From: Zootoca vivipara
Lineage: Eukaryota
Length of the DNA stretch: 64,000 nucleotides
Direction: 5' to 3'
Assembly: GCF_963506605.1 (NCBI RefSeq)
Contig: NC_083279.1
Coordinates: 70,618,001-70,682,000, forward strand
Under the pieces are notes generated by a model. The model saw only the letters and a program-made list of their open reading frames with translations. It did no database searches and was not told where the DNA came from. Below, piece by piece: positions 41,024-64,000 of this stretch. Position 1 is the first letter of the stretch. Each line of letters opens with the position of its first letter. The position numbers and the translations under genes were made by a program.

Positions 41024-41444
41024 TGTGAGGGACAGGGGATACCGGGAGGTCCCTCCCATCTTAAGTACCAGCTCATCGCCAAGCGCTGGGGAAAGCAGGG
41101 AGAGTTCCGCCTCCAGCGGAGACTCAGGAAGTGGTGTCCGAGGCTCAGGCAAGGTAGCGGAGCCCATGCCCAAGGTGGGACAGGAAGGGGGGAGCAAGGG
41201 GGGAAGGCTGATCCCGCCGACCCCGGAATTGCGCAAGAAACGTCGTGGGAAGAGGTTGGGTCTTCCCAAGCTTCTTTGCTGGAGGAAAACGCGCCAACCT
41301 CCATTCGGAGGTACTGACACCTGACTGACAACATGTATATAGATCGCTCCGAGCACTGTAAACAATCAGCACTTAATAAAAGCCTAAAAGGACTATGCTG
41401 TGAGGAGTCGTTACTCTAGAGTAGCCGCATCAGCATCTCTGACA
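41024..41444 (+). mobile_element. Solo LTR (421 bp) of a subfamily related to the Gypsy element at 58311
   Basis: TGTGAG...TGACA ends; perfect 5-bp TSD GAATG (41019-41023 and 41445-41449); colinear with LTR 58311-58738; AATAAA at ~41375. Confidence 0.92.
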
Positions 41445-42012
41445 GAATGTATTGACCATTTATATGCCTGAGTTAAAACTGGGATACCACTTAAACACCC
41501 TGTTATCTCCCCCCATGTGTTATTTTGCATACTATACCCTAGTGCTGTACATCTAGAAGACAGAAGATGGCACTGTCAACCTTCAGTGAAAGGAGCAGAG
41601 GAGCAGCTGTGGATCTTTAAATTTAGTCTCATCTAGTTAGGAAATGCATATTGGCATCTAGCATAAATATTTTAAAAATGAGTAACTGCACAATTACGTT
41701 TGCAGCTAGTGTGACATTGACATTTCACCCTTCAGTCCCATGCTATGGTCCAGACAAAAATAATGAGAATCAGTATTTACATATGTTAAGGAAGCTTTCA
41801 GTGGGGCAACAGTTAAAACACTTAAATGATGGTAGCGTGTATATGCTACATATTACAACCTCGTTTACACACTGGCCCAAATTATTGACATGAATACCTT
41901 TTTAGTAACTGGGTTTTGATTTTAAGTAACAAAAATCTGTCTGGGGAAAATACTCTGAGAAAGATCTAACCCCATAGATTTAAATTTCTTTTTTTAAAAA
42001 AAGCAATGCTAG

Positions 42013-58285: not shown

Positions 58286-58291
58286 AATAAA
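58286..58291 (+). terminator. Probable SFT2D2 poly(A) signal
   Basis: AATAAA preceded by a TGTA/T-rich cluster (58168-58210) and followed by CA dinucleotides at 58302-58308; ends a 3.3-kb repeat-poor, UTR-like tract. Confidence 0.55.
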
Positions 58292-58310: not shown

Positions 58311-58738
58311 TGTCACAGTGGCCGGAGTGGACTACTTCAGAGTAACGACGCTACGCAGCTCTGCATTTTATTCTTTTATTGGTGCTGCGTATTTACAGTG
58401 CTCAAGTCATTGCTATTTACACGGATCGATGTTGTCAGTCGGTTTCAGAACCTCCTAATGGCTTTTGGCGCGTCTTTCTCCAACACAAAAGCTTTGGCAG
58501 ACCCATCCTCTTGCCCCTCCTCTTCCTGCGTAATTCTGGAGTTGGAGGGATGGGTCTTCCCCCCTTGCTTGCCCCTTCCTGTCCCACCTGGGACCCTGGC
58601 TCCTCTACCTTGCCTGAGCCTCGGACACGACTTCCTGCTTCCCCACTGGAATCGGAACTCTCCCTGCTTTCCCCTTTGCTCGGGGACGGGCTTGAACTCA
58701 GGAGGGGAGGGACTTCGCGATATCCCCTGTCCCTCACA
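58311..58738 (-). repeat. 3' LTR (428 bp)
   Basis: Minus-strand TGTGAG...GTGACA; adjacent PPT GGGAGGGGGGTGGA at 58752-58739; tandem AATAAA on the minus strand at ~58367-58380. Confidence 0.93.
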
Positions 58739-61700
58739 TCCACCCCCCTCCCAAGCTCTCCTTCACCCCTCCCCAGGCCCCCCCCATGTGTCGGTGACGA
58801 CTGGAAGCCTAAGAACTCAGTGCTCTCCGAGCCCGTTGGTGTGAATACCTCCCCCCAGTCCTGCGAGCCCCCCCCTTCCGCCTGGGCGGACGGGAATCCC
58901 AAAAAGTCCGTGGCGTCAGAGCTGGTGGGGTTAAAAACGTTCTGCCAATCTGCTCCTTCCTCTGACTGGGTGGATCTCGGTGACACCCATACCTCATCCT
59001 CTGGTTCCTCAAACTCCGCTTCCCAGCGCCATGGTGAGCTGCTCTCCCGTGCCTCCTCCTCCTCCCCCTCCCTTTCCATGTGCCAGGGCTTGGGTCTGTG
59101 GGGAAAGAGGGCGTGAAATTCTTCCACCAAGAATTCCTCCTGTATCTGAGTGGCTGGGACCCATTCATTCTGGGACGGTGGAGCATCCTCCCATGCCATG
59201 AGGTACTCCAGTCCCCCCACCCCCCACCTTGAATCCAGGATGGCCGTGGCCTCATTGAGTTGCTCCCTGCCTTCCCTCTCCCCCCCTCCCTCGGGGGTTT
59301 GTTCGCTGTCTCGGAGCCTGCTGCTTTCCCTGTACGGCGACAGCAGCGATCTATGAAACACTGGATGCACCCTCATGTCCTCTGGCAGTGCCAGCCTGTA
59401 TGCCACCGGGTTTACCTGTTGCGTGACCGTGAAGGGGCCCAGCCTTTTGGGTGCCAGCTTTTTGCACCTCCCTCTGGTGGGAAGGCCCTCCGAGGACAAC
59501 CACACCTTGTCCCCCACCCTGATGACCTCCCCTTGTCGCCTGTGGCGATCTGCCCCCTTTTTGTACGCTTCCTTGGCCCTCTCCAAGTGTTCTCTGAGCT
59601 GCTGGTGCACCGTCTCCAGTTCCTCTGCCCAATCCTCAGCCTGTGGGCCCTCCTCCTCCTCCTCCTCCCTCTCCCTCTCTGGGAAAGATCTGAGGTCGCG
59701 CCCGTAATTGGCCTTAAAGGGCGACACCCCTGTGGAGACGTGCACCGCATTGTTGTAGGCAAATTCTGCCAGTGGCAGGCGATCCACCCAGTCCGTTTGC
59801 CTCTGGCTGACGTAACATCTCAGGTACTGCTGCAGAATGGCGTTGACCCGCTCCGCCTGTCCATTGGTCTGCGGGTGCCGAGCCGTCGACAAGCTGACCT
59901 CCACCTGCAGGAGGTTCATGAGCCGCCGCCAGAACCTGGAAACAAATTGGCGGCCACGATCCGAAATAACCCTTAAAGGTAATCCATGCAGTCTGAAAAT
60001 GTGATCAACAAACAGTTTGGCTGTCTCTTCTGCCGAGACTGCCCTGGCACACGGTATAAAGTGACACATTTTGGACATAAGGTCCACCACCACCAACACT
60101 GCAGTCTTACCCCTGGACGAAGGCAGATCTGTGATGAAGTCCATGGACACCACTTCCCACGGCCTGTGTGGTGTGGCTAAGGGCTCCAGCAACCCTGGTG
60201 GCGCTGCTCTGACCACCTTCGCCCGCTGGCAGGTGGTACAGCCCCTTACATAGTCTCGAACATCTTCCCGCACCCCTGGCCACCAGAAGTGTCTCATGAC
60301 TAGGTGAGCGGTTTTGTCCCTTCCAAAATGCCCCGCTGTAGGGTTGTCGTGCATCTGCTTGAGGACCGTACGTCGAAGCTGGGTGGTGGGTAGGTACAGC
60401 GCACCCTTGTAGAAAAGCAGCCCTCTGCGTTCTGCAAAGTCTTTTGCCTGCTCCCTCCCCCCTCTCAGTTCTCTGAAGATGCGGTTGGCAAATTCATCCG
60501 CTGCCGTCAGTGCTGTGAGTTCTGCCTCGCTCACCACAGCTGCTCCGCAGGACCATGCCGACGGGGGGAAAATGTGCCTTGGGGCTGGTGGCGCCTCCTC
60601 CTCCATGTACTCTGGCTTGCGGGAGAGGGCATCCGCCCTGACGTTCTGCTCCCCCGGGATGTAGTGGATGGAGAAGTTGAAGTTCGAGAAGAACTCTGCC
60701 CACCGTATCTGCCGCTGGTTGAGCACCCTGGCAGTTCTCCAGAACTCCAGGTTCTTGTGGTCTGTGCACACCTGGATGGGGTGCTTCGCGCCCACCAGGA
60801 AGTGTCGCCAGTGCTGGAACGCAGCGTAGATCGCAAGAAGTTCCCTATCAAACACTGTGTAGTTGCGTTCAGGCTGTGTCAGCTTCCTGGAGAAGAAGGC
60901 ACAGGGTCTCCACTCCCTGTTGGCGTCCAGTTGCAACAAAATTGCGCCCACAGCTTTTTCAGAAGCATCTGTCTCAATGCGTAGGGGCGCGTCCTGCACC
61001 ACATGGAACAGGTTTTGGTCTGAGGCGAACACTCTCTTGAGGCTTTCGAACGCTGCTTGCGCCTCTGGTGTCCACTTGAACTTCTGCTTGCCTCTCAGGC
61101 AGTCCGTGATGGGAGCCGTAACGCGAGAGAAGTTCTTGATGAACTTCCTGTAGAAGTTAGCGAAGCCTAGTAGGCGTTGGGCATCTTTGCGCGTCCTGGG
61201 GCTGTGCCAGTCCAGGATGGCCTGCACCTTGTCCTTGTCCATCGCCAGCCCCTTGTCTGACAGCTTGTAGCCCAGGAAGTCCACCTCTTTGGTGTGAAAC
61301 TTGCACTTCTCCAGCTTCACATACAGGTGGTGCTCCTTCAGGCGTTGCAACACCTCTCTGACATCTTTCACATGCTGCACTGGGTCATTCGAGTAGATAA
61401 GGATGTCATCTAGGAAGACCAAGCATTTCCTGAAGAGGAGGGACCCCAGGACGTGGTGCATGAAGGCCTGGAAGCATGCTGAGCCCCCTTGCAAACCGAA
61501 GGGCATCACCAGATATTCAAAAGAGCCCAGAGGCGTGAACATCGTGGTTTTCCATTCATCTCCTTCCCGGATCCTGATCAAGTTGTACGCCCCCCTTAGG
61601 TCCAGCTTGGTGAAAATCTTGCCCCTGCGTGCCGCTGTCAGGAGATCATCCACTCTGGGCATGGGGAAAGCCACGGGCTCTGTCACCGAATTCAGCCGTC

Positions 61701-62562
61701 TAAAGTCCACCACAAGACGGCGCTGTTGCGTGTCTTTCTTGTCCACCCAGAAGACCGGGCTGCCCCCTGCTGCCTTGCTTTCCCTTATGAACCCCCGCTT
61801 GAGGTTCTTGTCGATGAAAGCGCGCAGATCCTCCAGCTCCTGGTCTGACATGGCGTACAGCTTGGCTGGGGGTATCGTCGCCCCTGGCACCAGGTTGATC
61901 TGGCAGTCAAAAGGCCTGTGCGGGGGTAGGTGGTCGGACTCCGCTTCGCTGAAGACCTCCTGCAGGTCCCAGTACTGCTTGGGTATTGCCTCACCCCCTT
62001 TGATATGCATGGTGGCCACCGTGGCTATCGGAGGCCCCTCCCCTGGTTGGTGCTGCATGCAATGTTCCAGACAAAAGTCTGACCCAAACGTGATGCACCT
62101 CTGGTGCCAACTGATGGAGGGGTCGTGGCGCGCCAGCCAGCTCATGCCCAAGACGATGGGGGGGTCTGAGATGGTGGTGACGTTGAACGCCAGTGTCTCT
62201 GAGTGCCTTCCCACCGTCATTCTCATGGGGGGGGTTTGATGTGTGATGGCCCCTCCCAGCAGTTCCCTGCCGTCAATGGTTGCTACGTGCAGAGGAAAAT
62301 CCAACTGCAAAAGCTGGATTTGGTGCTCTTCTGCAAAGCTTCTCGAGAAGAAGTTGGCGGACGCCCCACTGTCAATTAAGGCGAGGACCGTCAGGGGATA
62401 GCCATTTGGGAGCGTTAGCGTCACTTCTAGAACCACTCCTGCTCTGGGAGGGGTGGGCTGGCTCTGCACCTCTCTGTGCGGGTGGGCGGGCTGGGGCTGT
62501 TGTCTGCTGACTGTGCCTGGCTGCTGCCCCTTGTCTCCTGCAGCCAGGCTTTCCCGTTTCCC
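58435..62562 (-). CDS. pol: Pol (protease-RT-RNase H-integrase-chromodomain plus long C-terminal tail), reached by -1 frameshift
   Basis: ALIDSGA (protease), LDLRGAY / MPFGL / FLDD (RT), TDAS...RELLA...TDHKNL...ADALSR (RNase H), HHCC, D-D-E, GPF motif, chromodomain; no stop over >1340 codons. Confidence 0.95.
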   Translation of the reverse strand, partial: GKRESLAAGDKGQQPGTVSRQQPQPAHPHREVQSQPTPPRAGVVLEVTLTLPNGYPLTVLALIDSGASANFFSRSFAEEHQIQLLQLDFPLHVATIDGRELLGGAITHQTPPMRMTVGRHSETLAFNVTTISDPPIVLGMSWLARHDPSISWHQRCITFGSDFCLEHCMQHQPGEGPPIATVATMHIKGGEAIPKQYWDLQEVFSEAESDHLPPHRPFDCQINLVPGATIPPAKLYAMSDQELEDLRAFIDKNLKRGFIRESKAAGGSPVFWVDKKDTQQRRLVVDFRRLNSVTEPVAFPMPRVDDLLTAARRGKIFTKLDLRGAYNLIRIREGDEWKTTMFTPLGSFEYLVMPFGLQGGSACFQAFMHHVLGSLLFRKCLVFLDDILIYSNDPVQHVKDVREVLQRLKEHHLYVKLEKCKFHTKEVDFLGYKLSDKGLAMDKDKVQAILDWHSPRTRKDAQRLLGFANFYRKFIKNFSRVTAPITDCLRGKQKFKWTPEAQAAFESLKRVFASDQNLFHVVQDAPLRIETDASEKAVGAILLQLDANREWRPCAFFSRKLTQPERNYTVFDRELLAIYAAFQHWRHFLVGAKHPIQVCTDHKNLEFWRTARVLNQRQIRWAEFFSNFNFSIHYIPGEQNVRADALSRKPEYMEEEAPPAPRHIFPPSAWSCGAAVVSEAELTALTAADEFANRIFRELRGGREQAKDFAERRGLLFYKGALYLPTTQLRRTVLKQMHDNPTAGHFGRDKTAHLVMRHFWWPGVREDVRDYVRGCTTCQRAKVVRAAPPGLLEPLATPHRPWEVVSMDFITDLPSSRGKTAVLVVVDLMSKMCHFIPCARAVSAEETAKLFVDHIFRLHGLPLRVISDRGRQFVSRFWRRLMNLLQVEVSLSTARHPQTNGQAERVNAILQQYLRCYVSQRQTDWVDRLPLAEFAYNNAVHVSTGVSPFKANYGRDLRSFPEREREEEEEEGPQAEDWAEELETVHQQLREHLERAKEAYKKGADRHRRQGEVIRVGDKVWLSSEGLPTRGRCKKLAPKRLGPFTVTQQVNPVAYRLALPEDMRVHPVFHRSLLSPYRESSRLRDSEQTPEGGGEREGREQLNEATAILDSRWGVGGLEYLMAWEDAPPSQNEWVPATQIQEEFLVEEFHALFPHRPKPWHMEREGEEEEARESSSPWRWEAEFEEPEDEVWVSPRSTQSEEGADWQNVFNPTSSDATDFLGFPSAQAEGGGSQDWGEVFTPTGSESTEFLGFQSSPTHGGGLGRGEGELGRGVDVRDRGYREVPPLLSSSPSPSKGESRESSDSSGEAGSRVRGSGKVEEPGSQVGQEGASKGGRPIPPTPELRRKRRGKRMGLPKLLCWRKTRQKPLGGSETD

Positions 62563-63653
62563 TGCTGTGGTGCTGCGTCAGTGGGGGAGGGCACCACCGT
62601 TCCCGCCTTTCCTTGCCACTCCCTGCGATGTGGGCAGTCTCTGACGAGATGCTGGGGTGAGTTGCAGAGAAAGCAATTCCCGCCCCTTCCCTCCTTGCGT
62701 CTTGGCGCCGCTGGGGTTTGAAAAGCCCGCGCGCGCGCGCTATCAATCTGCATGGGCTCCTGGTCCTGGCTGGCTCCAGGCGTGGCCTGAAAGGGTTGTT
62801 GAGGGAGTGGCTTCTCCTGCGACCGTGGGAACCAAGCCCGCTTTGCGCGCGTCGCTTGCTTGTCGTTCCACCGGGATTCCTGCCTCACCCCCACCGCCAG
62901 AGCTGCTTTGCTCAGCTGATCCATAGTACTGGGCTTTGGACCTCTCGAGAGTTCATCCTTCACCTCCTCGCTCAAACCCAAGTAAAACGCAGCTTGCATG
63001 GGAGGCGAATCCAAAACCCACCCCAGTCTGTGCACCAGCATGGTGAATTTCGCCCAATATGCGCGAACTGTCATATTTCCTTGGCGTAAATTATGCAGTT
63101 CCTCCTTAGTCTGGTCCAAATGACTATCGGACGAATACATCGTCCTCAAACCTTCTAGAAATTGTTGGACATTTTTCATGCAAGGATTCTTGGTTGCGAT
63201 TAATGGTCTTAGCCACTCCCTGGCTGCTCCGGTGAGATGTTCCACAATAAACGCTACTCTGTGCTCATCATCGGGGAACTCATTCTGGTGCAGCTCAAGA
63301 GCATACACGATCTCAGTCTCAAAGCCCTGAAACTCCTTCGGGTCTCCATTGAACTTGCTTACAAGGGTCCCTGCTCTCCTTCCTGGCAGCACTTGGACTT
63401 GGGGAGCCCCTCCCGCCTTGTTTTTCTCTGCATCCAGCTTGTTTTGGAGGTCTACCGCCACCGCCCTTAAATGCTGCTCTTTTTCCTGGAGCTCTCTCAC
63501 CTGTTCCGCAAGTTGTAGCCGGTCGTCCTGGACCTTCTTAGTCTCCTCTTTAGCTGCCTTCAATTCTCCCTGCGCCTGCAGCGACAGCTGTTGCAGTTCT
63601 AGCTGGGCTTGCTCAGCGATCTGCCGCCACTTCTCCGCCTCGGACACGCTCAT
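62427..63653 (-). CDS. gag: Gag (coiled coil, capsid, CCHC zinc knuckle), 408 aa
   Basis: ATG at 63653 (MSVSEAEKW); LRQGNMTVRAY capsid motif; CFLCNSPQHLVRDC knuckle. Confidence 0.93.
   Translation of the reverse strand: MSVSEAEKWRQIAEQAQLELQQLSLQAQGELKAAKEETKKVQDDRLQLAEQVRELQEKEQHLRAVAVDLQNKLDAEKNKAGGAPQVQVLPGRRAGTLVSKFNGDPKEFQGFETEIVYALELHQNEFPDDEHRVAFIVEHLTGAAREWLRPLIATKNPCMKNVQQFLEGLRTMYSSDSHLDQTKEELHNLRQGNMTVRAYWAKFTMLVHRLGWVLDSPPMQAAFYLGLSEEVKDELSRGPKPSTMDQLSKAALAVGVRQESRWNDKQATRAKRAWFPRSQEKPLPQQPFQATPGASQDQEPMQIDSARARAFQTPAAPRRKEGRGGNCFLCNSPQHLVRDCPHRREWQGKAGTVVPSPTDAAPQQGNGKAWLQETRGSSQAQSADNSPSPPTRTERCRASPPLPEQEWF
62493..62562 (-). promoter_or_regulatory. Programmed -1 ribosomal frameshift signal
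   Basis: G_GGA_AAC at 62562-62556 in the gag frame; 6-nt spacer; 10-bp stem GCCTGGCTGC/GCAGCCAGGC; loop GGGGC can pair with downstream GCCCC; the -1 frame opens into pol. Confidence 0.88.
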
Positions 63654-63682
63654 CCCGGCAACTCCGAAGTAGCCCAAAAATG

Positions 63683-63693
63683 ATTAGGAGGTT
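63683..63693 (-). promoter_or_regulatory. Primer binding site, self-priming type
   Basis: AACCTCCTAAT 2 nt after the 5' LTR; no TGG start; exact complement of LTR 63844-63834. Confidence 0.75.
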
Positions 63694-63695
63694 GC

Positions 63696-64000
63696 TGTCA
63701 CAGTGGCCGGAGTGGACTACTTCAGAGTAACGACGCTACGCAGCTCTGCATTTTATTCTTTTATTGGTGCTGCGTATTTACAGTGCTCAAGTCATTGCTA
63801 TTTACACGGATCGATGTTGTCAGTCGGTTTCAGAACCTCCTAATGGCTTTTGGCGCGTCTTTCTCCAACACAAAAGCTTTGGCAGACCCATCCTCTTGCC
63901 CCTCCTCTTCCTGCGTAATTCTGGAGTTGGAGGGATGGGTCTTCCCCCCTTGCTTGCCCCTTCCTGTCCCACCTGGGACCCTGGCTCCTCTACCTTGCCT
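63696..64000 (-). repeat. 5' LTR (partial)
   Basis: The 305 visible nt appear identical to 58311-58615. Confidence 0.95.

Follow-up and report, generated by a model that had tools for sequence, protein, structure and literature searches.

We examined a 64,000-nt window of the Zootoca vivipara genome (RefSeq assembly GCF_963506605.1, contig NC_083279.1, positions 70,618,001 to 70,682,000), the minus strand of which carries an intact, recently inserted Ty3/Gypsy chromovirus whose integrase ends in a disordered tail with two tandem repeat units, each closing with FLGF. Judged from their sequence, these repeats are a genuine linear motif under selection and likely represent a form of integrase tethering not described before. 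We are highly confident that the units serve some function for which they have been selected; that they imitate the cellular partners of LEDGF/PSIP1 and HRP2/HDGFL2 and would thereby tether the intasome to transcribed chromatin marked by H3K36me3 is the reading that we favour, at about even odds.

The initial annotation of this DNA had described the FLGF units as a repeat with a 30-residue period downstream of the integrase chromodomain, and minus-strand translation returned their coordinates, frame, and sequences exactly, with the Pfam chromodomain lying upstream of both (Table 1). The units are 19 amino acids (aa) each, offset by 90 nt (30 aa) within the 1344-aa pol open reading frame (ORF), and a recount reproduced the annotated figures of 12 identical residues out of 19, 10 of those 12 being specified by different codons. 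At the DNA level, 36 of 57 nt are identical, and the differences are distributed over codon positions 1, 2, and 3 as 4, 3, and 14, respectively. With third positions divergent in 14 of the 19 codons and the residues nevertheless retained, the repeat appears to be held by selection on the protein. The Nei-Gojobori proportions of synonymous (pS) and non-synonymous (pN) differences were 0.90, which is saturated, and 0.23. When 21 random substitutions were simulated under neutrality, the probability of retaining at least 12 of 19 residues was 1.35e-4 and that of retaining the W, F, F, G, and F together was 1.1e-3; additionally, the best 19-mer pair in 300 shuffles of the tail never exceeded 9 identities, compared with the 12 observed. 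The linkers of both units lack basic residues (0 in each), and each unit contains one [ST]xx[DE] site of the CK2 type.

Searches with the whole Pol protein and with its last 400 aa retrieved, as the nearest proteins, Gypsy Pols of Podarcis muralis and P. lilfordi (57-66% identity) together with Pols from two further assemblies, and every such close relative possessing a tail has the same type of unit after its chromodomain. The shared pattern consists of W/F-x2-3-hydrophobic-F, a 9-residue acidic/Ser/Thr linker, and F-x-G-F. It was found in 21 instances in 14 representative proteins, usually two in tandem, and was retained by 34 of the 35 additional cluster members whose tail spans at least 90 aa, so that FxGF withstood the conservation check in related elements. 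Position counts were taken from a 22-row table anchored at FxGF, in which one extra row is probably spurious. The G at +2 and the F at +3 are invariant (22/22 rows each), whereas +1 is free (R, L, E, Q, H, V, K, I); position 0 is F in 18 rows, L in 3, and M in 1. Upstream, positions -5 to -1 hold D/E/S/T, positions -8 to -6 hold T/P/S with some G, D, and E, position -10 is mostly F, Y, or L, position -14 is W or F, and R is common at -15 (10/22 rows); downstream, S occupies +6 in 14/22 rows. Across the clade the linkers measure 9 residues, or 8 in the Podarcis relatives forming group B, with 5-9 of 9 positions being D/E/S/T and 0-1 being K/R; at least one CK2-like site occurs in 16 of the 21 instances, and position -2 is S or E in 14 of the 21, T in 3, and D in 1.

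Outside the motif, the tails of the clade are scarcely alignable: between the window and the group B tails, the motif alone aligns well (62% over 21 aa). Tandem units are also present in the proteins P0124, P0125, and P0128 and likewise in group A (P0001, P0002, P0004). In local alignments, unit 1 of the window pairs with the first motif of P0124, P0125, P0128, and P0002 and unit 2 with their second, indicating that the duplication predates the clade, an age consistent with the saturated synonymous sites. The earlier view of an old duplication under protein selection is thus borne out, with a two-motif layout common to relatives whose Pol is ~60% identical and with pS far above pN. In the P0005/P0007 and P0002 clusters (Podarcis, >=90% identity), R, Q, H, and W replace one another at the x of FxGF next to fixed neighbours; we dropped this alternation as a sign of selection, as all of these changes are expected when a CGN Arg codon in genomic copies decays at its CpG.

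In a maximum likelihood tree built from the Pol core, with the chromodomain and tail left out, all eight full-length motif bearers fell on one branch (Shimodaira-Hasegawa-like approximate likelihood ratio test, SH-aLRT, 100), requiring one change of state. This branch is nested within a squamate Gypsy group and contains paths of up to ~1.0 change per column. Among the sampled relatives outside the clade, no FxGF was found in the tail. The tails of P0020 and P0022, two cage-intact proteins of Anolis carolinensis, show an acidic run followed by N-L-G-F, possibly a weak or unrelated look-alike of the motif.

The chromodomain itself departs from its class. Of the 89 aligned relatives, 74 have a [YFW]-W-[YFW] methyl-lysine cage; the corresponding columns of the window copy read N-W-A, leaving one aromatic of three in place of the canonical three-residue cage. 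The cage is broken in 8/8 full-length motif bearers, those of Podarcis reading N-W-E, Y-W-E, S-W-E, N-K-F, and N-R-T. Loss of the cage together with gain of the motif fits a possible switch in the mode of targeting. AlphaFold2 (AF2), run on the chromodomain plus tail with the clade alignment, gave a folded chromodomain (predicted local distance difference test score, pLDDT, >90) and a disordered tail (pLDDT ~50), and it did not confidently place the tail against the chromodomain.

The layout of the units matches that of motifs read by TFIIS N-terminal domains (TNDs), of which the integrase-binding domain (IBD) of LEDGF is one. A TND-interacting motif (TIM) combines an obligate short helix anchored by F, V, L, or I, an acidic, G/S/T-rich linker of 8-16 residues that is phosphorylated by CK2, and an optional FxGF (PMC9987994). 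FxGF is nevertheless present in all known LEDGF and HRP2 partners and essential for their binding; two or three serial TIMs occur in JPO2, SPT6, LEO1, ASK, and IWS1; and several TNDs read TIMs, with selectivity arising from subtle differences in pocket and charge (PMC9987994). The related IBD-binding motif (IBM) has the consensus (S/E)xFxGF, and in the validated DPF3a peptide both Phe residues are essential and Ser phosphorylation raises affinity (PMC7337902). The FxGF contact with a LEDGF-type domain is conserved as far as Drosophila, where JIL-1/JASPer use it (PMC6877644). Set against these definitions, the window tail provides a disordered region, an acidic G/S/T linker within the length range, and F-x-G-F twice, and most of the 22 rows carry the W/F and F/Y/L residues by which the anchors are recognized in sequence. 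Group B and the DPF3a peptide (PMC7337902) even have in common an L-F anchor and the string S-T-F-H-G-F-D. The resemblance to TIM/IBM sequences put forward in the initial annotation therefore agrees with the published layout (PMC9987994, PMC7337902), as does its parallel with the tandem motifs of JPO2, one of several proteins with serial TIMs (PMC9987994). A full-text literature search, which left many subscription papers outside its reach, found no report of TIM/IBM motifs in long terminal repeat (LTR) retrotransposons, in keeping with the earlier remark that no description in a Gypsy element was known.

Taken together, these features suggest a mechanism in which the tail motifs would dock the integrase, and hence the intasome, on LEDGF/PSIP1 or HRP2/HDGFL2 by imitating their cellular partners, the docking site being the TFIIS-N-type domain (IBD) of these H3K36me3 readers. 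The W-x-x-V-F anchor residues could form the short helix, the presence of two motifs on each protomer of a multimeric integrase would increase avidity, and binding may become stronger when the linker is phosphorylated at its CK2-type sites. Insertion would then favour transcribed gene bodies and 3' ends, and the motifs may have replaced heterochromatin targeting after the chromodomain lost its methyl-lysine cage. We regard the broader scenario, in which a vertebrate Ty3/Gypsy lineage gave up heterochromatin reading by its chromodomain and then evolved tandem mimics of LEDGF/HRP2-binding motifs directing insertion to H3K36me3-marked genes, as plausible yet tentative, a little short of an even prospect.

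Several observations weigh against this proposal. Position -2 is T in both window units and not the S/E of the IBM consensus, although T is phosphorylatable and the spirit of the (S/E)xFxGF rule may hold. The only helix in the AF2 model spans four residues (QNVF), has low confidence, and belongs to unit 1. Within the clade, the first motif of group A has L or M for the first F of FxGF, and that of P0126 lacks the G. Consensus matches of such short linear motifs are loose: the folded reverse transcriptase (RT) of Gypsy elements often contains plain FxGF, with 143 cases among representatives from outside the clade, and the relaxed motif pattern matched an RT segment in four of these representatives; as FxGF is common in folded RT, it is the tail context that is specific. 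Clade members of named origin are so far all lacertid lizards. Loss of the cage and gain of the motif fall on the same branch and hence amount to a single event, with no replicated correlation, and the clade member P0131, which lies outside the cage table, retains W at the second cage position. Finally, the insertion-site evidence described below comes from one locus.

Should the motif be real and selected and yet have a partner other than LEDGF/HRP2, such as another TND (IWS1, TFIIS, ELOA, MED26, PNUTS) or an unrelated acidic-aromatic reader, the host process tapped by the element would differ. This is unlikely, in our view, though it carries some weight. W-x-x-x-F and acidic-aromatic stretches are typical of PEX14-binding, activation-domain-like, and LC3-interacting W-x-x-V motifs too, and the T at -2 in the window units points in the same direction. 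The subtle selectivity among the several TNDs that read TIMs also speaks for such a partner (PMC9987994), whereas the invariant G-F within F-x-G-F is tied specifically to LEDGF/HRP2 (PMC9987994). The W-x-x-x-F and W-x-x-V spacings, moreover, are lost in group B, which has W-L-F, and readings based on them consequently fail on conservation; the LC3-interacting W-x-x-V, PEX14-type W-x-x-x-F, and FFAT-like F-F-D-D candidates were dropped, each being kept in part of the clade only. The wider reach to TFIIS, ELOA, MED26, and PNUTS proposed in the initial annotation likewise gained no specific support, the literature tying FxGF to LEDGF/HRP2 domains.

Conservation by itself does not point to a host chromatin partner, and the motif could instead serve the life cycle of the element, through an intramolecular or inter-subunit contact of the integrase, a processing or turnover signal, or an aid to nuclear import. 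A basic patch and the C-terminal end of the tail are conserved as well, which suggests that the tail has several functions. We consider such a role improbable: the AF2 model docks the disordered tail nowhere on the chromodomain with confidence, and the absence of the motif from all other sampled chromoviruses, which have the same core machinery, makes a generic life-cycle function unlikely. Far less probable still is that the peptide is functionless and the similarity due to a constraint on the nucleic acid close to the polypurine tract (PPT), to a recent duplication, or to chance. The motifs do lie ~70-210 nt from the PPT in this copy, and the PPT accounts for one conserved stretch, the G/E-rich run ending VDVR, whose consensus among relatives is 'GG.GG..G.VDVRE'. 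The divergent third codon positions with retained residues and the outcome of the shuffles contradict this explanation, the group B motif lies ~130 or more residues upstream of the PPT-encoded stretch, and the motif persists throughout a clade whose Pol core shows ~1 change per site. A PPT-adjacent cis element was accordingly dropped as a candidate, given the codon data and the variable distance to the PPT.

Known tethers of retroelement integration include LEDGF for lentiviruses, BET proteins for murine leukaemia virus (MLV), Pol III factors for Ty1 and Ty3, Sir4 for Ty5, and methylated H3K9 (H3K9me) for chromoviruses. Lentiviral integrase binds LEDGF through the folded dimer interface of its catalytic core and not through a linear FxGF, and the targeting domain of Ty5 integrase, which binds Sir4, is a phosphorylated peptide that imitates a host protein. 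Unlike the lentiviral route, that of the lizard element would be a linear FxGF motif imitating cellular partners. The proposal nevertheless resembles HIV-1 and other lentiviruses with LEDGF/p75 in that an integrase would use an IBD/TND to reach transcribed chromatin marked by H3K36me3 (PMC9987994). The C-terminal tail of MLV integrase binds the ET domain of BET proteins, a case that also features in PMC4027182. With MLV and Ty5 the element would share the use of a short C-terminal tail peptide as a tether to a host chromatin protein, while host partner, motif, and target chromatin all differ. Canonical chromoviruses (Tf1/sushi-type, with an H3K9me-reading chromodomain) arrange their domains in the same order and likewise carry a folded chromodomain C-terminally on the integrase; in contrast to them, this copy has its cage reduced to a single aromatic and an FxGF tail added. 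Cellular LEDGF/HRP2 partners (KMT2A, JPO2/CDCA7L, IWS1, POGZ, ASK, MED1, and DPF3a, as well as Drosophila JIL-1) exhibit the same disorder, hydrophobic anchor, acidic/S/T linker of fitting length, and F-x-G-F, with JPO2 also carrying its motif copies in tandem; unlike in these proteins, the candidate motif here sits in a retrotransposon integrase and has T at -2 in the window.

Integrase tethering sets the landing sites of retroelements and hence their harm or tolerance. If the proposal holds, a Gypsy lineage reaching LEDGF/HRP2 by partner mimicry would be an independent, convergent answer to the problem faced by HIV, and no retroelement other than the lentiviruses would have been found to use LEDGF/HRP2 before it, nor any to reach them via the linear-motif route of the host partners. 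It would also offer a natural system for TIM/TND specificity and would lead one to expect that a seemingly active lizard transposon family inserts preferentially into gene bodies.

The element is a Ty3/Gypsy chromovirus by its LTRs, gag, the pol order of protease, RT, RNase H, and integrase, and a C-terminal chromodomain (Table 1). The 5' and 3' LTRs are 100% identical across the visible 305 nt, and the start of the 3' LTR at 58738 was fixed by contigs and by 96 RNA reads breaking exactly there. The motif units lie ~20 and ~50 residues upstream of this LTR start, in the internal region. Over 43 nt (62427-62469), gag and pol overlap in different reading frames, an arrangement suggestive of a programmed frameshift. 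Directly after the 5' LTR (63660-63695), we found no canonical TGG primer-binding site; the element may self-prime as in the Tf1/sushi group.

Table 1. Coordinates of the chromovirus and of the repeat units in its integrase tail (positions within the window)
Feature	Position	Strand	Description
3' LTR	58311..58738	minus	TGTGAGGG...CTGTGACA; encodes the final 101 aa of Pol
pol ORF	58435..62469	minus	Uninterrupted, 1344 aa; Pfam domains protease, RT, RNase H, integrase zinc finger, core, SH3, chromodomain; disordered tail after these
Polypurine tract region	58739..58774	minus	Adjoins the 3' LTR upstream; encodes a G/E/R-rich stretch ending VDVR, common to relatives
Motif unit 2	58804..58860	minus	Pol residues 1204-1222; D-W-x-x-V-F, 9-residue S/T/E linker, FLGF
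Motif unit 1	58894..58950	minus	Pol residues 1174-1192; D-W-x-x-V-F, 9-residue S/T/D linker, FLGF
Candidate degenerate third unit	58981..59031	minus	Pol residues 1147-1163; W-x-W-E-A-E-F, acidic linker, V-W-V-S replacing FxGF
Chromodomain	59113..59250	minus	Pol residues 1074-1119; Pfam PF00385, E = 3.6e-6
gag ORF	62427..63677	minus	416 aa; Retrotrans_gag / Ty3 capsid and zinc knuckle (Pfam)
5' LTR	63696..64000	minus	Last 305 nt visible; the window ends there

The candidate third unit sits, as read from the translation, within the acidic insert separating the chromodomain from unit 1; its kinship to the other two is speculative, being a resemblance that aligned inconsistently. The Pol end encoded by the LTR (58435-58738, 101 aa) contains a basic patch and a C-terminus (L-L-C-W, a basic part, and an acidic S/T end) common to Podarcis relatives. 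Since those relatives have a Pol ~60% identical, selection appears to act on this peptide as well, perhaps because it serves as a nuclear localisation signal. A homolog search with Pol residues 1065-1344 alone gave no match, probably because low-complexity words crowded out the candidates. A tail-only phmmer search of 1.8 billion representatives returned three matches, to unrelated Ig-like receptor repeats and a simple repeat, and querying the PDB by sequence with the motif region yielded designed WD40 repeats alone (E ~0.5); both sets were rejected as spurious.

RNA reads from the source species had their first mate mostly on the plus strand, a bias that probably reflects sense transcripts of the minus-strand element, as read in most stranded libraries. 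The majority of these reads derive from copies 90-95% alike, which differ within the units at N1177H, V1178I, N1180T, and G1206A and by two silent changes; the W, F, and FLGF are unaltered, the changes being confined to variable positions or to V->I. RNA depth (run X22) was 150-250 over the LTR (58311-58738) versus 13-28 over the internal tail region. The 96 reads breaking at the LTR start pass into many different flanks, from which we conclude that many LTR copies lie in sense within longer transcripts. Near-identical sequence was also present in the sequencing runs of three further organisms holding at least half of the sampled words.

In the host flank, an AATAAA at 58286-58291 follows a T-rich stretch, and the LTR edge (58311) comes 19 nt later, an arrangement that places the insertion at about the cleavage point of a plus-strand transcript. 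This copy is one anecdotal insertion at a probable gene 3' end, in line with the proposed targeting. Elsewhere in the window, a solo LTR of a related family lies at 41024-41455, 76.5% identical to the LTR of the element and in the opposite orientation.

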